DNA from: Trichosphaerium sp. ATCC 40318
Taxonomy: Eukaryota; Protista; Tubulinea
Assembly: GCA_038496445.1 (NCBI GenBank)
Contig: JALMLS010000376.1
Span: forward strand, 124,001 to 188,000
Reading direction: 5' to 3'
DNA: 64,000 nt
Notes under the pieces: generated by a model
What the model saw: the letters and a program-made list of their open reading frames with translations, nothing else
The model's database searches: none
Told to the model about the DNA's origin: nothing
Shown here: positions 21,764-39,024 of the stretch, piece by piece
How the letters are laid out: each line of letters starts with the position of its first letter
Position numbering within the stretch: the first letter of the stretch is position 1
Translations under genes and position numbers: made by a program

Positions 21764-23062
21764 TTAGATAGGCTTATACTCGTAAATAGTAGATGTCTTT
21801 TCGAACGAGAAAGCCTTTAGACCCAACCCAGCAAAGGCTCTGCCACCAACTTGAAACGTGGTACCATCAAGGTGCTCACCTTCTGGATAGTTTCCAACCA
21901 GGTCCCAAGAATTGGCAGCAATGCTGTACCGGTAAATTTCGCGTCTGTAAGTATGTCCAGGCATATCTTGATACCCAGTGCCTACGAAACCATACTCACC
22001 AACTGAGAAGCCAATGCCTTCTCCAACAGGAATAGGAATGGAGCTTGAATAGGGTTGTCAATATCAAAACAACAAACAGCTAAAAAATGTGTACCTTAGT
22101 TTTGTCCATCGTCTGGTGCTTAAAGTGTGTTCGAACTCATAGAAGTTGACATCAAGTTCTTTGTTCTTCTGGTGGATGCCGCCACCGACGAATATGCGTT
22201 CTCCAGAGCGAAACATGAAAGCTCCACCAACATTATGAGGGTATGAAGGTAAGACACCTTCCCAATCAAAGCCATTAAATGTGTAAAACTGCCTTACAGC
22301 GCCATGCTTTGCGAAACCCAACCCGACATACGCCACATTGTCGATAACAAAGGACATTAAGTCATGTTGCGGTGGCGGTGGAAAGTTCTTTGTGTGCAAC
22401 TCTTTCCATGAGTCTACAAAAAAGTAAGGTTCGGCCTTAGAGCGCAGCTATACGTACCGGTGCTGGGCGAGTACTCAAACAACGAATTGGTATTGTGGCA
22501 CGTAGCGTTACGACCACCAAAGATGTATCCTTTGCCATTCATTGTAAAGCCAGTAGCTTCAACGCGGCTTTCGGGCATTGGAGCAATTTGAGTCCAACTG
22601 TCTTTATCGGCACTGTAGTAGTAAAAATCTTGTGCTAGCTCCCCAGGGCAGTAATCTTCGCCTGTTGCACCAGAACCGACGTATGCCTAAAAAAAGGTTT
22701 AATTGCAACGTTTCATATTAGCTAGGCGGTACTTTGTCTCCAATAGTAAAAGAAGAGGCTCCAGTTACCGCCAAAGGGAATGACGCCTTTTCTTCCCACG
22801 AACCATGACAAGTATGTCTACAACAGCTTTAGATGCTTAAACTATGCGTAAATAATACCTTAAAAGAGTCATCATGTCGTCTGGACCCATATGCTTATCG
22901 CTAGTCAAAAGACCCTACCAAACGTTAACAAACAAGCCTCTAATGTATAACAAACTGTACCATGTTCAAGTTAAAAGTATTAGAAGCATATTCACCGTTT
23001 GTAGAGTGCAAGATGCATAGGACAATTGTAGCTGCTAAGAAAACGAAGCAACGGATCATCAT
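21764..23062 (-). CDS. Secreted Kelch-repeat beta-propeller
   Basis: Signal peptide MMIRCFVFLAATIVLCILHS; six repeats such as SFTIGDKAYVGSG..DFYYY...DSW, GFTMNGKGYIFGG, SFVIDNVAYVGLG, TFQVGGRAFAGLG. Confidence 0.85.
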
Positions 23063-24954: not shown

Positions 24955-27729
24955 CTAAGCTAGTTTCTTATTGAGTTTACTGTTCCTGATGCCTAAAAGG
25001 TGTTTAATACGAAATCGCAAAAATACGATTTGTCTTTCGTCTAAAAATCGTACCATAGACAAAGTAAATGAGTAGTCCAATAAGAGACCATATTAAAACA
25101 CGATAAATCGCGTCTACAGGTAACTCAACAATCAAGTAAATATTGATCAACATGCCCTATAAAAAATCATCAAATTTACGACGTATAACTAACATCGTAA
25201 GCAAATATTACTCACCAACATTGGAATTAAAGGTACAAGAGGACATGTGAACGTCTTTGGAATGTCTTTAGGGCTAATAAACAAATCAACAATAAGAAAC
25301 AAAAAGACGCGTTTTGAAAAAAAAAAAAAAAGCTTGCAACTACGTTAAGCAGGTAAACTGCTCACTTGTGAGAGGTGTTTAAGCATTTTTGAAGAAAAAT
25401 AAAAATGACATACCGAAGGATTTGTAACAAGAAGTAGATGATAAGTAGTGGAACACCTGAGATAACTTTTGCCCACCTGCGTTTAAAAAAGTAAGCTTGA
25501 GTTGCACTAACAACGGTGAGGTTAGTGCATACCAATCTGTTTGAAGTTTGAATGAAAGAGAGAAGACAATAGAGAAAACAAAAAATGACATGACAAGAAG
25601 AGGAACACAAGGAAGTGTAGCTCTTGCAATAGGTTCAAGGCAGCTTAAGTAAGAGTCTAGAAAAAAAAATGTCAATAAGAATAAAAAGCCAAACCAGTGA
25701 GTACCAAGGTGAGCATGTTCGCGAAGCTCTACGTTATCATTTGCAATACTATCAACGCCAAAACCTGTTGTAGAAAGTTAGTGTTTAAAACATTTTACAA
25801 AACTCCCGTACTGTCAAGTTTATGACTTTGTTCGCGATAGCGTAGAATAATTACACCTCCACAAACAACACAGAACGCTAGAAGAGTTCCAAGAGAGATC
25901 ATGTAACTGAGTGTTCCCAAGTCAAAGATAAAAGCCAAAAGACCTGAGAGCAAGCCACTGATAATAGTTGCCCATACTGGAATTTGTCTGCTGTTTAGCT
26001 GTCCAAAAAATTTCCACAAGAGACCCTGTGATGTACTTGAGCACGAAGTAAGAACATAGATAAGGAAACTTACATCTTGCGCCATTTGATAAAAAATACG
26101 TGGTTGTCCAAGCAAAGAAGCAAGGGTTGTTGCTGTTAGCGTTGTAACAGATCCAGCTGCTACTATGGCAGCTGCCCAGTTGTATCCCACTATGGACACG
26201 TTGTTAACGAGAGATGTAAATGTATGTTTTTACCATCAGAAAATGATGTAGATAGAGGTGAATCCGCATTGAGTTCGTAGTAAGGAACCATACCAGTGAC
26301 AACTTGAAAAGGATGTAAGTAACGCCAAAAGATATCTTTAAAGAACGTACCAAGTGAAACAGCAATATATAAAAGAGTAACAACACCAAGAGTGCCAACA
26401 ATACCGATAGGTAAATCACGTTTTGGGTTTTTAACCTCGCCTGCTAATGTAGTAACTGAATCGAATCCAATATACGAGAAGAACACCAACCCGGCACCTA
26501 AAATCCGTTGTCAACAACGAGAACAATGACTAAGATATGAACTATTTTTTTTTTTCAATAAAAAGTAGTCGTACCTCTGAACACTCCTTGAAACCCGAAT
26601 GGAAAGAATACCTCCCAATTATATGTGTCTACTTTTGTAGATCCAAGTCCAATGATGAACAAAATAACAATACTACAAACAGTAAACAAGAAAGCAAAAA
26701 GAGAAAACAACGTACATATTTAAAACCGTCATAACGACATTAAACATTGCTGATTCTTTAGCGCCAAATAGTAGGACACATACGCCTAATGTGCTATTAT
26801 TTAACGCACTGATTTCTTTAACGTACATAGCACAATAATAATGACTGCAAGTGGACTCAATGAAAACGAAGCTGAAACAATAGGCGTTAATTAAAAACAA
26901 AATTTGAACTTTGACGCACCAAAAAGCTTGTAGTTATGTAACCAGGCAGGTGGCTTTGTTTTAAAAACAACCTCGATAAATGATACAATATAACCTGCCC
27001 ATCCTCTTGCAACAGCTATGGGCCCAAATAAGGAACAAACCAATACTGGCTATGTACAAATTTGGTAAAAAAAAAAAACATACCTGACGCAGAAATACTG
27101 TATTCTAGCGTTAGATTCCAACCAATCCTAACCACAAGTTAATAAAAAGTAATGTGTGTTTGAATTACATACAGCCATCCTACTAGTTCACCCAGTGCAA
27201 CATATGAGAAAGTGTACGCCGAGCCAGAAACTTGGAAAAAATTAAAATGCATTTTTGGGAAAGGGAATTGTTAAACCCATTTTCTGCCTTACCAGGTATT
27301 CTAGCAGCGAATTCAGAGTAGCAAAAGGCTGAGAAAAGGGAAGAAATCGCAGCAGTCAGAAAAGAGAAAACAATAGCAGGGCCGGCGTTATCCTTCGCTA
27401 CGACGCCAGTTACAACAAAAATACCTGCCTATTAAACGATTAAACGCTATAGTATGGATATCAATCGTACACCAACTGTAGCGGCTAAACCATACGCAAT
27501 TAGATCAACAATAGTGAGACTACGCTTCAATTTGGAGCCTTCTGGCTCACCGTCACCTATAACATAAAATCGGCCATTATTAATCAACACTCGAAAACGT
27601 ACCCTCCTCAGGCTTAATAGGCTGCGTGCGCATCAAATTAGCCACTGTATAAAATCTGAAAAACCCACCGCTTGACGGCTTTTCGCCAACATCTCCGTCG
27701 CTATTTATTAACGACGCTTGGTCCGCCAT
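24955..27729 (-). CDS. Cationic amino-acid transporter-like APC permease
   Basis: LKRSLTIVDLIAYGLAATVG-GIFVVTGVVAKDNAGPA; VFFSYIGFDSVTTLAGEVKNPKRDLPIGI; LLGQPRIFYQMAQDGLL; FTCPLVPLIP (AA_permease_C). Confidence 0.93.
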
Positions 27730-27889: not shown

Positions 27890-30800
27890 CTAAGGAAGAA
27901 GTACAATCGGCCGGTGTAATATAAGCTCAGGAGGGATATTCTTGTCATTTCGCACTAATACAAGGTTAACAAAAAAAACATGAAACAATAATTTCTTTTA
28001 CTACGTACCGATATGACTACGTGCTGTCTTTGACCGTAACTTATTCGATGAAGACGGTCCGAGAATCTCTTGAATTTTTAAAACCTTGCTGAGTGTTTCG
28101 CCTGGATCCATCCATTGTTTCATATCATCCAGTAACTCGGCAGATAAGCAATTCTGAGCCTAAACATATATGGTTAGATATGTTCAAAAAAAGATCCATT
28201 GTTTACGACTCTACGTACATCATTTGCCATAAATACAGAGAGTGCGAACATGTGGAGGGTGCAAACAATCGATTGGTTGTAAATACTCCTTTCCGAAGCA
28301 TCTAACCAAGATATCGTGCAAAAATGAGAAGGTTTGTAAATTTTCAATGCCATCGAATAAGATTGATAAAAGTGGTCAGCAGCTTCATCATAACGCCCTT
28401 GCAAGAAAGCAATATTTCCTGAGATACAGCGTTAGCAACAAAAGTAAATCAAACAGGTCATAAGTCATACCAAGCTGATGTCGGACTGTACTACCGTAAA
28501 CTTGAGTGTGTTCATCACAAATTGGAAGAGAACGCTCGAAATTACTTTTGGCTTTTTCAATATGTCCTTCATCCCCTTGAGATTTGCTCTGTGTAGCTTT
28601 TTTAAAGTATACAATGCCTTCGTTATGAGATAGTGCTGCCAAGTTCACATGTGTGGCGTTGAAAAATGTATTCATTATCGCCTTAGCCACTTGGAAAGCG
28701 TTGAGAGCTTCTTGTAAATTATCCTATAACAGGTTGTTAGACATAGAGTTTACTTTGTCCAATAGAGCTTGCGTACCTCAACAGTGTAAATAACACCAAG
28801 ATTATGGATTGCAACAGCCATTAGAGGGTGGAAAGGAAGACCTCTATTGTTACAGTTAATACTAATTAAAGTACTTAATAATTATTACGCACCTCAATTT
28901 AGAGTTCGAAGTAGCTACAACTCTACGTGATATAACAGCGTTTAGCCTATCACGTAAAAATTTGATACCCTCCCAAAGGGTAAGCTGAGCAGAAATCTTA
29001 TCTCCCTTGCGCAGAAGAATAGCGGACTAAAGAAGGATAAGACAAATATAACAAATGGAGTACCAAACGTACTCTTGTAATGTATAATCTACCAACAAGC
29101 ACAACGTTATCTTTTGGCAAGAGAGTACTCAAGTGCATTCCAAAACCACAAATCTTTGTTCCCTACAGAAACGCAGTGTTAGTAATCGGTTACGAGCTGA
29201 ACTTTTATCTTGCTTACCTCATCGTAGTGGGAGAGTGTTAGTAGCAAGCAAGCAACACAATTCAAAGATTTAATGATACTAGCCACCATTCTCTTCATAT
29301 TATTCTGCCTAGCCTAAAACAATCATGTCAATAAAACCAGGTGCCAGTGTAAAACAATTGTACCTGTAGCTCATCATTAGGATTTCGCACAGAAAGCTCT
29401 TCTTTCACATTTGCGAATAAAATTTCTTCCAGCTTTTTACGTTCATGTGTTTTACCACTCTGACCACGTGTTGCAAGCCACGTTTGAAGGCCACTTGCAT
29501 TTGCTGGCGATAATTGGAATAAGAGCTCTTTCTTCTTTTCAATGATACCAGGCTGTAAAAACTTCATTGTAACCGACTTTGTAGGATCGTAGTAACCTTT
29601 AAATAGATTGTATGCAGCCTTTAAGAAGTAAGTAAATGAATCTGAAGATAGTCTGATTAACACGAACCTCAAAGTCTTGTCCAAGAACATGTAGCCAAGC
29701 TAATGAATTTGCAGCCTCGAGGAGTGTATACAATACTTCCCGTTGGAGGTTATCTGTTCCTTTGTTAAGGATATCGTACAACTGATTCCGTGCTTCAAGA
29801 AGGAAGGTTTCAGCCTTCTGTAAGTAAGCATAAGATGTTGCACGGGTTATCTACACAATTTACCTTATTTGGTTCTCTGTAACAACTACGCCAAACTTTT
29901 CCTTGGCCCCAGAGACACTTGGCACGAAGTAAAGCTGCTTCTAAATACACAAGTTCCTTTGGATCAGTGTTACGCAGTTTGTTGTTTATTGCTTGGAGAG
30001 CAAGGTTGAAGTGACTAATAAGTTAGATTTTTCTAAATGGTTAAGGTATTATACGTACACTAAAGCATCCTCAGCCCTAGCACAGGCTTCGTACAAGTAC
30101 TCGCCCATATTATAACGAAGCTTTGCGGCTTCGTAGAGAATATCTACTGGATCATTGTTACCGGTAGGTACACGTGCAAGGTCCTTCAAGATCGTTAATG
30201 AAAAAACAAATGGTGTGGAGTACGTACCTTCGTTGCTGCTGTTACTGCTCTTGCGTGAGGGAATAGGGTATGGAAAACATCCCAAGCCATCAAATCTCTG
30301 AGCAAATGTTAGTAAAACTTTTTTCTCTTTACAAACTACGAAAATTACGTGAAATAAAAAACGTACTTGTGGTTTGCAAAACAAAACGAGTTTTGCATCA
30401 ACTCAATAGCATGATTGATATTAACAGCACCCCAAGATGTGCTATCATTAGCTTGGTGCCACAGCTTCCAACGAACAATTTCTTGTGTAAAGTACAACAA
30501 ACTTATTGTACCAGACTTGGTATCTTGCTCTACAATACCCCATTGCGCTAACAAATTGATGTATTTTTCTGTTCTTTCTCGTTGTTTCCTAAACGTTCCC
30601 TTTAGATGCGGGTCACATAAGTCTTTTAATTAATTTGTACCGCCACTCAAAAGCCTTTTTTCTTTGTTCCTTTGGTAGGATGTAGTACGGCACTTTGTCG
30701 AGCAAAAATAACGGAATATTTTCCCTGTAATTCAAATGTGTTAAACTATCAATTTGTAGCATAGTGTAAAGTACCTGTCCATAAAGGCAGCGAACTGAAG

Positions 30801-33597
30801 AATGAGGTTTCGGCTCTTTTTGCCAGCGCCAAGTTCTGTTTTAAGCTCATTGAGGGCCAAGTCAAGAGTTGGACACAAAGGAATATGACCGTCCATAAAA
30901 CCATCAATATATTCCTGTCCAAAAAGTGCCAAGTCGAAGCGAGGGCCTGACGTTGGATCATCAGGGTCCACCTTTTCTGTGAGTTTGGAGTATAATAGTG
31001 CTAGTGGATTCTTTTCATTGTGTTCATCATATTTTTGTAGAATGTGACTACTTTGTACAAGAGCAAGTGGTAGATAGTGAAGTGTTTTAACAATATTCCG
31101 AGCCAAATTAACTTGTTCATGATTATCCCAATCGAATTTTATATTCTTGACAAGTAATTGTATTGCATCGTTATCCTAAAATAATAATTGAGTTAAATTG
31201 TACATAAAGACAGAAAAAAAATATGACCGTTGGGAGATATTGGAAAATACACAGAATGACGTAAACGCACGTGTTTTAGAGGTTTCAAGTGGATTGTGTG
31301 AAGTTTCTCTGATAGTTGTGGTGCAAGTTTTGGATCAGAGCGAACAGAACGTCGTGATATAAATATTAAATGACCTCCTACCATTGGTGTTAAATAACAA
31401 CTTTTTATTGGTGAAGGAAAATAGTAAAAAAAAGAAATTACGAATTTACGGTTGCACTCACCTCGTTTTGGAAAATAACAAGTGAGGTCGTCGCCATTTC
31501 CTACGTTGGTAGTTTCTTGTTCAAAAATGAGTAACCACGGTCCATGATTCTCCAAGTGCCGTATTGTAGACTCAAGTTGTACTTTCCAATCGATAGCCTT
31601 CCAGCTACCAGATAGTGCAGCAGATAATTGGCCAAAGTTTTGTTTTATTTTACCCTATTAGACGGTTTAGAGCGTAAGAATAAAAGACTTTAGTTACTTG
31701 TTTCATCCACCAAATAACGGAGTACGAGCTTCGTTGTTCATGGCAATACTTTCGAACTAATTGTGTTTTACCGATACCACATCTCCCGAATATATTAACA
31801 ACTATCGTTGGAGACTCTGCCACTGCTGCCGCATCGCCTACGACCAAGTGTTACAATAAAGTTATTAGGTATAATAATATGGCGTACCCAACATCGTCTT
31901 GAGGGACGTGATCTCATCGGACCTACCAACAAAGTGTTTCGTTGGTATATCAAAATTGATAATTCTGCCAAGTTGTCCACCCACATGCGGTTGTGGTAAT
32001 GCGACCGTATTCGTTCCCGTGTCCATTGCTTGAGCACGTCTACGAGTCATAGTTCCAACCTTCATTGATGGTATTACTTTGGTTGGCGGAGCGTAATTCT
32101 CTGTCCTTTGTCGTTTTCTACGAAAAAGTAAAAAAAAAATTATGATAAAGCCAGTTTTGCAATTCCTTACCTAGTCGGTTGTTGCGATGTATCATTCGAA
32201 TTAGATCTACGACCATTCTGTTTCCTGGCCTTATATTTCAACTCAAATGGTTCAGAATCCCAAACCCAGTTCTGGTATTTAACACGAACAGCAACAAACA
32301 ATTGAACTTTAGAGTCACGAGAGTTTGATTGCTTAAGAATAAATAAACATTTTTTCGAAAGAAATTTTGGTTCGTACTTTTTGGTTCGTAGACTTCCTTC
32401 CAGAATACAAAAAGCAAATAGGTGTACACTGAGGAACAAGTTTCGTTATTTTAGCTGTACCGTTTTTTATTCCTTTCCAACTGAGACTTGGTGACGCTTT
32501 TAGATACGTAGCGTGGCGACCGCACATGGCAGGCTCAAGTGCAGAATCAGATCCACGTTTGCAATGAAACTGCAGTTCAACGTGATCCGCAGTAGCTAAA
32601 CATCTTGTTTACAGTGCACACTTATTCCTTAACGTACTGACAAAAGGTTCTGCAGCATAGCCTCCATCCGCATTGTATTTGTGGTGCATCATATCACGGT
32701 TATCTCGCGCATTAACAACAATCTGGTTGATGCTCTATGAATAAAAAAGTAAGGCGCCAAGTGGTATCAAGTGTTTTCGTCATACGGTTAAATACTCCAA
32801 AGAGATAGTTTTAGCATACGCAGGACTCGTTTCGAATTGAAGAAATAATTGAGTGCCACGACCAGCCTGAATTACAGATGCCTTTTGATTAACGGTGACC
32901 TATTCGAAGGAGAAAGGCTTATAAGCACACCACTTGGGAAAATGAAAGTTCACGGTACCTTCCCTACAATGTGTACGGCTTGTGCGTGCTGTGCTTCAGA
33001 TTCCGAGAGGTGTCGCTCCAATAACTGTGGTTGTAAATCTCGGGCTGCTTGTTGTTGTTGTCGACAGCGTACCCACTCGTCGTTGGGTAAATTCCAGTTA
33101 GCCCCCATGCCAAATTCGGGTGGTTGCATCATCGATGATGGTAGCATCTCTTCTTCGCCCATCCTTGTCAAGTTTTAGAGTTGGCCATTTAATTTTTTTC
33201 CGCAAATAATTTGTTCGTAGCAAAAAAGGATAATAGACATGGAACGTGGTTAAAGAAAATAACGTGGTATAATTTAAGCGTTGTTTGTTGCTTTTTAGAT
33301 AATTTAAAGAGTTGAAGAACCAAACATTTAAAATAAACATTTAATAAGGTAATACGCGTTAATAATGCGTACCGTTGCATATTTTGTGTAACTAAGCGAG
33401 CAACTGCTATATCGTGATGTGGGTTGCCGTGTATGCCCCAGGCATCAAGCCCTTGGTCCATACTACCTGTTCGACGCATAGAATTAATTTTGATTTGCTT
33501 TCTCCATTCTTTGGTTACCTCCGTATGTTTTCTGTGGGATCTGTTCCCAATGGGCATCATAACCGTCAACTGGCGCTTCTTCGTTTTTTAAATTCAT
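27890..33597 (-). CDS. NLR-like STAND NTPase: N-terminal putative p53/CudA-like DNA-binding domain, NB-ARC, TPR repeats
   Basis: FVGRSDEI; Walker A GRCGIGKT (about 31764-31787); SYSVIWW; Walker B-like WLLIFEQ; GHLIFISR; LHYLPLALVQ; TPRs (HPLMAVAIHNLGVIY, GRYDEAADHFYQSYSM); about 20 introns. Confidence 0.85.
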
Positions 33598-33737
33598 AAC
33601 CCTACAGTAGCATTTTAAAGTGTTCCCTTCTTTAATGATTTGGGAACGGTATTTTGAACTTTTTTTGACTTTTTTTTTTACACAACGGGCTTCTAGATGC
33701 CCTAGTTACAGTCGTACAAATCTATACAGACTCTTCT

Positions 33738-35445
33738 TTAAAATAGAGCGTTCTTTTTCTTTGTCGTGTGTGGTTGAAACTGGCAAGAAAACGCTTTCGC
33801 GCCATAGTTTATATACACGTCAATCTTTGATGTATTTCCGCTAGCAACTAAAACCTAAACGGAGATTCACATGTGTTTATTTTGTTTGTTTAAAACGGCG
33901 ACTTAGTTTTTCGTCAAGTTTTTTTTTTCGAAACCAAAGACTGCTTTCGTACCTTGTTGTTTTTGGCCATTGATAAAGAGAACAGTGATCTAGATGACGC
34001 TTGAGATCTTATTTTTAGTTCCCCGGAGATGCTCCAGTGCCACACGTGGCTATCAGGACCAACAGAAATAACCTACAAGCCTATTATTTTATAGAATTTC
34101 TCACTTCAATTATGTACTTTGTTGTCCACAGAATGCTTGTCAAACATCACACACTGTGGTGCGCCTACGGTGGGCATATATCTAAAGCATTCGTAAATAT
34201 GGGAACAACGACAATCCCAAAAGTCACACAAGACGCTAGAACTTACGCAGTGGTACTAAGCATTGGTAGATACCAAACTGAGAGACACTTTGACGTTCCA
34301 CAAACCTTTGAAGATAAAAATAAATACACCATGTCACAGAAAACAGAAATTTCTTTGTACCATCCAATTTCCATTTGCATCAATGTCGAGGCAGCCCACC
34401 CAGCCTGCTTGCGACTTCGCGTTGTCGTCATCCAATTGTATACCCATAAGAGGGTCTAACGTACAGACATTGTTCATTGAGCGCGCGTCTATGGCCCAGT
34501 GAGAGTTGTAGTTTTGTGTTACGTACCCCAAAATTTTACTGTGCCATCATTTGACCCTGACACAATTTGTCGCGTTATGTTATTGGACTTGACGCAATGA
34601 ACATAGTCTTGGTGCCCAGTGAATGAATGCATTGGTACCTGCTTTTCCAGGTCCCAACAATGTACATTGCCATCTCCAGTGCCAGAGAAGAGGTTTTGCT
34701 AGATATTTGATAAGTACTATTCAAGGATTTGTGTAAATGTCAATCTTTTAGATAACATACCATTGAGTCAACCGCCAAACTATTTGTTTCTGCTACAGGT
34801 CCTAAAGCGCCCATATAGCCCTAAATACAAGTCAATAATACACCTACAAGAAAAACCGCTCGTACGGTTTTTTGTGGGTTAACGAGTTTGCACAAAGTTG
34901 GTAGGTTGGCTGTTTTGACACCTGAAGAAATTGCATCGAGAATGTTTTGCCAATTCCAAACATTGACATGTGATTCACCTCCACTAAAAACACTAAGTTA
35001 TTATTTCACAGCAATAAAAGCAACTTTACCAAACCAATGTTACACCAGGTTGACGATCTATAAATGTTGACGTGTATATCGCTCCAATATCTGTTTGTAT
35101 GTAGAAATCCGGTGTTGGATTGTGCGCCATGCTGATAAATATTAGCATTGCCGTTACGTCTTTCTTCTACCTGTCTTTTGAGGTCCAAAATGCTGGATCC
35201 TACGTTGCAATAAGGGTTTGAACAGTAATTTCGGCAGTTGTACTCACAAAGAACGCTTTGATGTGCCATACACTCAATTGGCCACTATCATTACCAGCAA
35301 CGAGGTATTCGCCGTCTGGAGATAAAGAAGTAGTGTAAACTATGCAATTTTTTTCTGCGCGTTGCTGTTTCAAATATTGCTCGTATGTGTCTTCATCTAG
35401 AAAGTTTTCGAACCCTGACGGTGTTTTGAAAAGACTTTCGGCCAT
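33738..35445 (-). CDS. THOC6: THO complex subunit 6 (WD40)
   Basis: LSPDGEYLVAGNDSGQLSVW; PVAETNSLAVD; FTGHQDYVHCV; GWVGCLDIDANGNWMVCG; C-terminal IDVYINYGAKAFS. Confidence 0.85.
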
Positions 35446-35576
35446 AGTATTTATCAAGCGAGTTATAAACCGAAGTGTACCTCCCTCTTGCGTATAGCGT
35501 TGAAATAGGCATGTGCCACTTTTCAAAATAAGTCAATTTAACAGAGGCACCGCGGGTGACGTCGCCGCTGGCTGTA

Positions 35577-37342
35577 ATGAGCAATCAAGCTGACAAATCT
35601 ACCTTTACGTCTACACCGAGACCGTAGGCATTACATCTTTGTAACATGTCAATAACACACTGTAGGCAACTGTCACAGAGCGATTCACAGCGAAAACCTG
35701 CTCAGAGTGCGTTTGTGTTTTTGTAATAGTTTTTACCCATCGTTTAGGTGTCGGTAATGCGCCAGCAGCTAAATTAAGTGCTGTGGCGAAAGAAGGTAAC
35801 GTTTGTAAATAAATTCGCACCTAACGTACTCAAGCCGCCGCTATGCGCTTCTATAGCGCCGACAGATCAAAAGTTGACGTTTCAGCTGTGCCACAAACTG
35901 TAGAAGGTTTAAAAATTTTGATTGTACGGTTTCTGGCAATAAAACGGCGTTAACATGTACAAAATAGAAAAAAGGCGCTTGGAAATCGGTACTAAAATTG
36001 GCTGACACTTGTATTTCAAACGCCACCTTACCACACCATAAATTACAATTTCGCTTGTGCATTATTATTGCGTTGATGAAAATGCGAATGTACCAAACAG
36101 CATGGAATGAATTTGGTAAACTTGGAAACTTCGAGGACCCAGAGCATCAATACCAACACTACCCTGACGTGTATCCAGGACAAAAAGGTTTGTCAACTGA
36201 CACGCCATTTTTACTGAACCAATTTGTTACTAGGTTCAATGATTCCCTTTTCGATGCGTTTGTTATTAGCAGAATTACCATACTACCTTGGCAAAGACCC
36301 GAACCTAGATGCGCTGTATTCTTTGCTTCAGATGTGCACCGAGCAAGTTGAAGCCTTGGCCACACAAGATGTAAAAGATGAGAAAACACCAGAAAAAGAA
36401 CCCGAGAATACAGAAGAAGGTAATCAAACTACAGAAGAGAGCACAGAAAAGAATGATGAGTCGAGTGATTCAAAGGACGAAGAAAAAGTTGAAGACCTTA
36501 CAAGTGATGCTGCGCATGTGCCTTCGTTAGATTTGGGCGCTAAGGTAAATGATCCACTCTCAAATTATGTTGGCGTGTCATCTACAGGTATGCACCACTT
36601 ACAGTGTACAACTAATGTTTTCACAGACGAACCACGTGTTTGGATAGAGCGGCAAAATCGCGTCTTGTTATCACTTGCTACGCGACTAATAAGAAACAAT
36701 GAAGTGCTACTGGCGCTACAGTTGTTTAATAGAGTACTTTCAAAATGTCCTACTGATGCTGTGATTATTTCAGCTTGCGGGAGACTATTACTACAGGCAC
36801 AAAAATGTTAGAAATTCAGTTCGCTTACACGATTAGATTGGTAATGTTCAAAGCGCTTCTAGATTGTTTAAACGTGTGGAATCTATAGTAGAGAACCCAG
36901 AGAAATCAGTGTTAGTATGCGTGAACAAGTAGGTCATCTTTGTGCGAAAAAACATTAACACAAAACATTAGAGGTTACCTCGCGTTGGTTCAAGAGGAAC
37001 CTGGCGAGGCGTTAGGTTGCTTCGATAGAGCGTCTATGCTTGATCCATCTAGTACCGTTGTTGCGAACAATAAGGCCTTGTGTATGTTGTACAACGGTAA
37101 ACTACCGGAAGCTATCGAATTTTTAGGCGCGTTTTTCGGTTTCTGGGCGCGTTTTAACATTTTTTTCAGAATCGTTTGCAAAAGTCGACCCTGAAAGGCA
37201 CCTTACTGATGACTTGGTGTTTAATTTATGCACAATGTACGACCTGCAATCTGCCAAGTCTGCAGTGAAGAAAAAGAAGCTTTTGGAGCTCATTTCAGCG
37301 TATGCTCCTGATTCTTTCGATTTGACAGTACTTGGCTTGTAA
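35577..37342 (+). CDS. TRAPPC12: Trafficking protein particle complex subunit 12 (TPR)
   Basis: [73 protein letters not shown]. Confidence 0.92.
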
Positions 37343-37553: not shown

Positions 37554-39024
37554 ATGACCACAACAACCGTAAGCCTAATTTTGCGAGCCGTTTAAAAGTT
37601 GTTAATCCCTTTAGAATACCGTTAGTATCGACAACGCACTTGTGCAGCATTCACGCAGCTTTTTACTTGCTTATCAACCGGTAAGATTTAAAACGCAACC
37701 CTACAAATCTAATGTATTTCGCAGAGATGCCCTCCTAAACCAGACTTGTGGCAAAAATTTTATGAGATTGTTCTCTTCGCGCCTGCGCAACAGGTAAAAT
37801 TGCTGTTAGCCTTCAATTCTAATCTCTTTTAGGCAGCAAACCCTATTCCAAAGAAATCCACACCCAAAGCTCGTCGTGTCGCTTCTAAGCCAAAACCAAA
37901 GGCCCAGCGCACTACACGACAACCTTTCACAAAGATTATTAATAAATCACGACCAGCAATTCAAGCGAGCAAGCCTGCATCTAAAACTAAAGCCGTGCGA
38001 GCACGTAAATCAATTTTTGGAACACAAAATGGCGCCAGACTATCACAAACACCAAAGGCTCGTAAAGTCCTCGGCAGTATCAACGTTGAGCGTCATTGCG
38101 CTTCCGTTGGCAAGATGAAGGTATAATTCAGCACTTTCTCCTCATTTTGCTTATTTTTGCCAAAGTCACAGCAATCAAACGTTGGACGCGCTCAAATTAT
38201 ATACAAAGATAGAAAAGTTCCATCTAGCCCATCGACGTACGCATTTTTAAGCTTTTCTTTTGTACAAAAGGGATAGACTTTTAATTTTTTTTTGTAGATT
38301 TACAACTGCCTCTACTCGTGCATCCAGTTCTTCAAAGTTGAGCGCCCGCATCATGCCAGCACCTATGGTGCGTGTTGCACCTCTATCAGTCACTGGTGGT
38401 TGTGTATCTGTTGCGAAAGACGCAAGCCCACTCACCGTAAAGAATGTTGTTCATACAAAAGCCAGTAAAAAAGCGACACCAAGCAAATCGCGAGGAAGTG
38501 TACGTTAAATTTTTCAAATTATTTTTTTTTTGTATTTGGCGCGAAATTTCTTTATTGATTTTTTTGTTAGCCTGCACGCGAATCCAATGAACACAGACTT
38601 ACACAACGCCAAAAACAAATTGACATTGGCTATAATACCGTTGGATACCTTCGTCTTGTGGAATTATTCGCAGACAAGGAACAACGACCAAAAATTTACA
38701 CTCACCAACAAGAGGATGAGCCTGCCAAAAAATTGGCTGTACCAGCAACGCCAGATAAGTACCAAGGTATGTCATTACAATCTGTCTCTTTATTTGAACC
38801 ATACTCATCTCTTTTTAGTGTGTTCTAAGCGTTCCTGGGATGGCCAAGTCAGAAAATGGCGCAGACTCCTTCATCAATTCGATCCTGAAGATCTCGATAA
38901 ACAGAAATATGCTTCAAAGTTGAAGCCATTCGAGAGACGCGTAGTTACCCCAAAGGATCAGCGCACTTGTACTAATAAGCAAGCCCAAGAACAGACATCT
39001 CCAAGACGTCAACTAATTTTTTAA
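37554..39024 (+). CDS. SLBP: Histone mRNA stem-loop binding protein
   Basis: RLTQRQKQIDIGYNTVGY...PATPDKYQVCSKRSWDGQVRKWRRLLHQFDP is the SLBP RNA-binding domain; basic low-complexity N-terminal exons. Confidence 0.88.

Follow-up and report, generated by a model that had tools for sequence, protein, structure and literature searches.

We analyzed a stretch of 64,000 nucleotides (nt) from the marine amoeba Trichosphaerium sp. ATCC 40318 (contig JALMLS010000376.1, positions 124,001 to 188,000; hereafter the window, with positions counted from its first base). In this window, a gene on the minus strand between positions 27890 and 33597 had been predicted from the sequence to encode an NLR-like receptor with a p53/CudA-type DNA-binding domain. 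The gene comprises 27 exons and 26 introns, all of which are bordered by GT..AG, and splicing leaves a single open frame that extends over 1,383 codons, from an ATG at 33597 to the stop at 27890, assuming that intron 1 is spliced. The introns measure 42 to 95 nt, apart from a single one of 209 nt. Each of those located between exons 3 and 9 shifts the frame or contains an in-frame stop, and the frame is uninterrupted through the spliced exons 3 to 8. The peptides quoted in the original prediction were all recovered in the spliced minus-strand translation (IVGK/VTVNQK..., VELQFHC, AMCGRHA, KITKLVPQCTPICF, QLFVAVRV and DSEPFELKYKARKQNGRR). They are followed, as it had stated, by RKRQR spanning the exon 7/8 joint, by the P-loop GRCGIGKT and by TPR-like repeats. 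The encoded protein begins with an acidic tail and a domain at the N-terminal side (referred to as N-domain), which a basic linker connects to an NB-ARC-type nucleoside triphosphatase (NTPase) and the C-terminal repeats (Table 1).

Transcript data confirmed that the gene is real. Near-identical spliced contigs that match the gene model were found in four public runs from three studies. The exon borders of this model agreed with the transcripts at all 15 joints listed, from 27954/28009 up to 30723/30774, within an ambiguity of +/-1. A contig piece of X4 covers 31461-31653 and thereby places an intron at 31697-31655, with exon 9 at 31837-31698 and exon 10 at 31654-31462; its removal yields …WWMKQ/GKIKQNFGQLSAAL…, which looks like an ordinary stretch of NB-ARC. 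Further upstream, both X3 record 14 and X2 record 7 reach precisely to 32331, the 5' border of exon 7, and extend 26 and 78 nt further, respectively. In X2 record 6, a 12-nt loose end identical to the 3' terminus of exon 7 is fused to exon 8, and X3 record 13 shows this fusion from the opposite side. In addition, judging from its record coordinates, a 2979-nt contig of X4 spans the region from the 3' end to exon 9 and covers 26 nt of exon 8. These overlapping contigs link exon 6 to exon 7, exon 7 to exon 8 and exon 8 to exon 9, and the gene is expressed as a single mRNA from exon 6 to its 3' end. The possibility that the N-terminal exons belong to a separate gene, which had been named as a finding that would overturn the prediction, is contradicted from exon 6 onwards by the contigs that join these exons to the NTPase.

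Comparison of the window with the X2 and X3 transcripts revealed ten differences, two in intron 7 and eight in exons. All eight exonic differences are synonymous, including those in codons 254 and 296 within the N-domain. This demonstrates that the frame is read and that the encoded protein is under purifying selection.

Intron 7 (32118-32170, minus strand) was found in two states. X2 record 7 retains it, whereas it has been removed from X2 record 6 and X3 record 13, so that both forms are present among the RNA-derived contigs. When the intron is retained, translation stops directly after the N-domain.

We accepted that the central part of the protein is a divergent NB-ARC-type STAND NTPase and that TPR-like repeats come after it, an assignment which draws on motifs and partial family matches. 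The FVGR, P-loop, Walker B, sensor-1, GLPL-like and RNBS-D-like motifs occur in canonical order and at the expected spacing, as far as can be read at the level of motifs. All family scans were run exon by exon and not on the spliced protein. The P-loop exon matched NCBIfam NF040586 (FxSxx_TPR, bacterial NB-ARC-TPR) with an E value of 4.2e-8, and exon 12 matched the same family colinearly at E 0.21. Pfam NB-ARC (PF00931) was matched by the P-loop exon at E 5.8e-4 and 3.6e-3, the best single-exon score being 19.6 bits compared to a cut-off of 23.5. In the repeat region, TPR_12 was matched in two separate exons (E 3.3e-4 and 2.3e-4, both under the 30.1-bit cut-off). TPR_1, TPR_2 and TPR_10 matched more weakly, and the remaining repeat exons gave no match to a TPR profile. 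A read-through of exons 10 and 11 matched nothing among the PDB sequences. No helix-turn-helix or winged-helix DNA-binding domain was matched by any exon scanned against Pfam and NCBIfam.

The region upstream of the NTPase has a distinctive charge pattern. The tail, amino acids 1-126, carries a net charge of -9 and contains 11% glutamine (Gln) with one Q4 run at 33060-33049; the N-terminus, described as Gln-rich in the original prediction, is thus enriched in this residue to a modest degree. The N-domain has a net charge of +12 and contains four Cys and five His, among them H207-C208 (32572-32558), C221-x2-H224 (32524-32513) and C253-x3-C257 (32428-32414); its final two strands would lie at 32307-32230. 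The linker is likewise basic (net +8, binned as amino acids 311-399) and harbors clusters resembling nuclear localization signals (NLS), namely RKRQR at 32172-32105, which is split by intron 7, and TRRRAQ at 32047-32030. Another basic stretch, RKQNGRR (32226-32206), lies across the border between the N-domain and the linker. In a hydrophobic-moment test, beta-type periodicity prevailed in 55% of the N-domain windows compared to 39-42% in the helical parts of the protein, a mild bias that a Chou-Fasman profile is too crude to resolve between regions. The N-domain thus appears to be beta-rich, as we infer from its periodicity.

In order to find relatives of the N-domain, we searched several libraries. 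Single N-domain exons gave nothing relevant in Pfam, PADLOC or NCBIfam; rows for G6PD_C, zwf and PreA (E 0.01-0.1) in these scans were regarded as noise. In Pfam, no DNA-binding family was matched when all families were considered up to E 1 (exons 3-8) or up to E 5 (exons 4, 6 and 7). The p53-like families (P53, STAT_bind, NDT80/PhoG, Runt, RHD_DNA_bind and CudA-type) gave no match, which is a weak test given that the exons were scanned apart. Exons 6 and 7, used as phmmer queries against the PDB sequences with matches considered up to E 10, yielded no p53-like DNA-binding or otherwise relevant match. A phmmer search of 1.84 billion representative proteins with exon 6, the largest N-domain exon, revealed no true relative in a library that lacks the proteins of the same genome and therefore returned no self-hit. 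Three matches to exon 6 (E 1e-6 to 8e-4) were multi-copy repeat proteins scored over five to eight stretches and were judged spurious. Scanning the JGI metagenomes with exon 6 found no real relative and returned one locus, L001 (6001-6117), on a contig with 63% GC. This locus has in common the 8-residue seed DSALEPAM and a few neighboring residues, the rest of the protein is not nearby, and we consider it a chance match of the pre-filter. Neither exon 6 nor exon 7 retrieved anything from IMG/VR, and the ESM Atlas gave no usable match with exons 6 and 4. In a feature search of the ESM Atlas, exon 7 scored 0.81 for DUF4469 and 0.80 for RHD_dimer, both Ig-like, a level reached by a third of shuffled proteins. 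This possible Ig-like character of exon 7 is the only positive signal for the N-domain and, being below noise, serves as a lead.

Based on these results, we weighed what the N-domain might be. The original prediction saw in it a DNA-binding domain of the Ig type, p53/CudA/STAT-like and stabilised by zinc, in which case the protein would act as a one-component sensor and transcription factor. The N-domain is indeed similar in size to the p53 core, shows the beta bias described above and has CxxH and CxxxC in the same order as the zinc ligands of p53, after which come a beta strand and a run of basic residues. The basic domain and linker with RKRQR and TRRRAQ, the resemblance of the acidic, mildly Gln-rich tail to an activation region and the exon 7 leads to Ig-like families including RHD_dimer would also be in line with this proposal. 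Upon shuffling of the N-domain, the exact succession of CxxH and CxxxC, a pattern picked after reading the sequence, arose in 0.15% of cases, whereas any pair of short Cys/His knuckles arose in 11.5%. However, the two motifs are separated by 28 residues, compared to 58 in p53, which leaves too little room for the four strands that lie between them in p53. The order claimed for the putative ligands is present, and their spacing is unlike that of p53. Moreover, neither Pfam nor the PDB sequences contained a DNA-binding match, the Atlas scores are within reach of shuffled proteins, RHD_dimer and DUF4469 are generic Ig-like folds that do not read DNA, and the searches gave no relatives in which the conservation of the ligands could be compared. 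A zinc site is plausible in view of the Cys/His layout of an intracellular domain; a p53-type zinc site is not indicated. The p53/CudA assignment is thus left with no positive evidence, though it is not refuted, and a p53/Rel-type fold of the N-domain appears very unlikely. The same low likelihood would apply to the complete proposal of a zinc-stabilised Ig-like domain of the p53/Rel class that unites a TPR sensor, an NB-ARC switch and a transcription factor on a single chain. If true, it would represent a eukaryotic counterpart of bacterial AfsR and MalT and a DNA-binding analogue of CIITA. A nuclear or nucleic acid-directed output in a broader sense is a minority option, which the distribution of charges, the acidic tail and the clusters resembling NLS nevertheless keep in play.

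Alternatively, the N-domain might be a generic Ig-like adaptor or oligomerisation domain of the IPT/TIG type, which upon activation would recruit a separate effector and would not bind DNA on its own. The exon 7 leads all point to Ig-like families, the beta bias is compatible with such a fold, and the domain end …SEPFELKY may resemble the closing strand of TIG and RHD domains. In contrast, the Atlas scores lie below noise, Pfam revealed neither TIG nor RHD_dimer in the N-domain exons, and a single TIG domain of about 90-100 residues would cover only half of the 185 residues; we regard this explanation as unlikely. As a further option, the N-domain could be an enzyme that depends on zinc, such as a degenerate deaminase-like module. 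This would be consistent with H224-A-T followed after 24 residues by P251-Q-C253-x3-C257, which loosely recalls HxE…PCxxC in order and spacing, and conflict systems are known to use deaminases as effectors. Here, a Thr occupies the place of the catalytic Glu, and exon 6, although it contains the entire motif, gave no match to a deaminase family in Pfam, NCBIfam or PADLOC. In addition, the low-confidence model of this exon has a strand instead of a helix after CxxxC, and the domain looks all-beta and not alpha/beta, which makes an enzyme of this kind highly improbable. Hardly credible is the assumption that the N-terminal exons lie outside the functional protein, as an untranslated leader or a mis-joined neighboring gene, and that the product starts near the NTPase. 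The 5' end of the gene does allow for more than one start, one contig keeps intron 1, and X2 record 7 keeps intron 7. However, contigs join exons 6-7, 7-8 and 8-9, exons 3-8 form an open frame, both strain differences in the N-domain are synonymous, and the sole in-frame Met of exons 9 and 10, M444, is located past the P-loop.

We therefore favor, as the probable explanation, that the gene encodes an expressed and selectively maintained NLR-like STAND protein with a TPR sensor, an NB-ARC-type switch and an orphan output domain. The scaffold put forward in the original prediction, i.e., an expressed gene with an NB-ARC-type NTPase and TPR-like repeats, is retained in this explanation, and its p53/CudA domain is not. 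In such a protein, the TPR-type repeat region would most likely serve as the sensor and the divergent NB-ARC-type NTPase as a nucleotide-dependent oligomerisation switch. The lineage-restricted, basic and Cys/His-bearing N-domain of about 185 residues, apparently beta-rich, would be the output module. From the example of other STAND proteins, this module is predicted to become active when oligomerisation gathers several copies. The predicted succession of sensor, switch and output is derived from established STAND biology.

Several observations weigh against this explanation. The exon 3/4, 4/5 and 5/6 joints are outside the 15 joints listed and were deduced from GT..AG sites, intron size and the open frame. 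None of the single-exon matches to NB-ARC or TPR passes the curated cut-off, which is due to the exons having been scanned one at a time. An MHD-type His was not found; in an alignment made by eye, the position reads LLYFTQEIV. Exon 12, which covers the HD1/WHD region, retrieved nothing from the PDB sequences or from a word search whose length filter is blind to full-length proteins. AlphaFold models of exon 6 alone and of exon 12 alone reached a pLDDT (predicted local distance difference test) of 41 and 45, respectively, and both were unusable. Finally, the flanking genes are ordinary housekeeping genes and do not form a receptor cluster.

The 5' end allows for several start codons. X2 record 8 keeps the first intron of the original gene model (33467-33518). 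The ATG at 33597 requires this intron (33518-33467) to be spliced and, if it is retained, opens a short upstream open reading frame (ORF) only. The ATG at 33560 is in frame with exon 2 when the first intron is retained, and the ATG at 33162 is the first Met of exon 3. We additionally observed that, with the first intron retained, the short ORF starting at 33597 overlaps the in-frame ATG at 33560, and that a 3-codon upstream ORF begins at 33613. The retained intron together with the upstream ORFs could be a means of translational control or merely an unspliced leader.

Another observation concerns the splice sites of the gene (27890-33597). Fifteen of its 26 introns begin with GTAC, mostly GTACGT, and not with the usual GTAAGT or GTATGT, and intron lengths are tightly grouped at 42-59 nt. 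The donor bias and the tight size distribution look like a lineage-specific consensus of the 5' splice site.

Table 1 Features of the gene and its surroundings in the 64,000-nt window. Exon borders are given from high to low positions; aa, amino acids.
Feature	Position	Strand	Basis
5' leader with uncertain start	33373-33625	-	X2 record 8 colinear with 33372-33625, then jumps; reading frames
Exon 3, with exons 1-2 the acidic, mildly Gln-rich tail	32959-33163	-	Composition
Orphan N-domain, aa 127-310, exons 4-7	32209-32899	-	Composition, periodicity; no family or relative found
Basic linker, aa 311-379, NLS-like clusters	31949-32208	-	Composition; exon 7/8 joint in transcripts
Divergent NB-ARC-type STAND NTPase, aa 380-800	30243-31948	-	NCBIfam, Pfam, motifs
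FVGR (HFVGRSDE)	31936-31913	-	Motif
P-loop GRCGIGKT	31787-31764	-	Motif
Walker B WLLIFEQ	31537-31517	-	Motif
Sensor-1 region LIFISRRS (sensor-1 Arg, RNBS-B)	31369-31346	-	Motif
GLPL-like HYLPLAL	31079-31059	-	Motif
RNBS-D-like	30794-30712	-	Motif
MHD position, YFTQ	30500-30474	-	By-eye alignment
C-terminal helical TPR-like repeats, aa 801-1383	27893-30242	-	TPR_12 in exons 24 and 25 (28723-28219)
Exons 1-9	33597-33519, 33466-33373, 33163-32959, 32899-32786, 32734-32638, 32595-32378, 32331-32171, 32117-31888, 31837-31698	-	
Exons 10-18	31654-31462, 31377-31271, 31175-30775, 30724-30641, 30588-30367, 30297-30228, 30183-30059, 30014-29864, 29817-29668	-	
Exons 19-27	29618-29364, 29313-29218, 29162-29073, 29026-28893, 28843-28777, 28723-28471, 28418-28219, 28159-28009, 27954-27890	-	
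Amino-acid permease gene	25795-27729	-	Pfam AA_permease E 2.8e-8; first exon at 27729, ~160 nt downstream of the STAND gene stop
ORF, SLBP-type histone-hairpin RNA-binding domain	38530-39024	+	E 4.7e-9
ORF, TPR repeats	36224-37194	+	
ORF, WD40 repeat	35200-35526	-	
ORF, Kelch repeats	22064-22399	-	

No paralogue of the gene was found within the 64-kb window; the neighboring genes and ORFs are included in Table 1.

Among eukaryotic proteins, the nearest precedents for an NLR that controls transcription are vertebrate CIITA and NLRC5. Both are nuclear transcriptional regulators of the NACHT-LRR type which possess NLS motifs and, at the N-terminus, an acidic activation region, and which do not bind DNA on their own. 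An acidic N-terminus and NLS-like motifs are common to these proteins and the one described here, a likeness by description only; CIITA and NLRC5 differ by their NACHT-LRR architecture and have no beta-rich N-domain. In bacteria, AfsR/SARP-type regulators and MalT carry winged-helix/BTAD or LuxR helix-turn-helix domains, whereas the protein of Trichosphaerium matched no DNA-binding family in Pfam or NCBIfam with its single exons. If the original prediction were right, the protein would follow the same logic as these regulators (PMC4381067), with sensor repeats, a STAND switch and a DNA-binding output on one chain. The bacterial FxSxx-COOH system TPR protein (NF040586) provides the best family match of the P-loop exon along with the weak colinear match of exon 12. 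However, the convincing part of the match is limited to about 35 residues, the score is far from the whole-protein cut-off of 300 bits, and the N-terminus is unlike. NB-ARC-TPR genes have been described in Acanthamoeba and Ectocarpus (PMC4053784), and NLRs are known from fungi (PMC4986451, PMC9815663). These eukaryotic NB-ARC-TPR proteins share the plan of a variable N-terminal domain, an NB-ARC and TPRs, and are cytosolic proteins encoded by intron-rich genes. The gene analyzed here differs from them in having an N-domain whose exons matched no Pfam, NCBIfam or PADLOC family and in its very divergent NTPase.

Overall, knowledge of NLR-like STAND proteins is poor beyond animals, plants and fungi, and it is their N-terminal domains that set what a sensor does. 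The gene is an expressed and well-supported addition to these proteins, and no relative of its output domain could be detected in the libraries searched; at present it is an ordinary scaffold bearing an uncharacterised domain. If the fold of the N-domain turned out to be a DNA-binding Ig-like one, the protein would illustrate a new way to wire innate sensing straight to transcription. If, instead, the N-domain is a new effector fold, it would add one more output domain to those of immunity.

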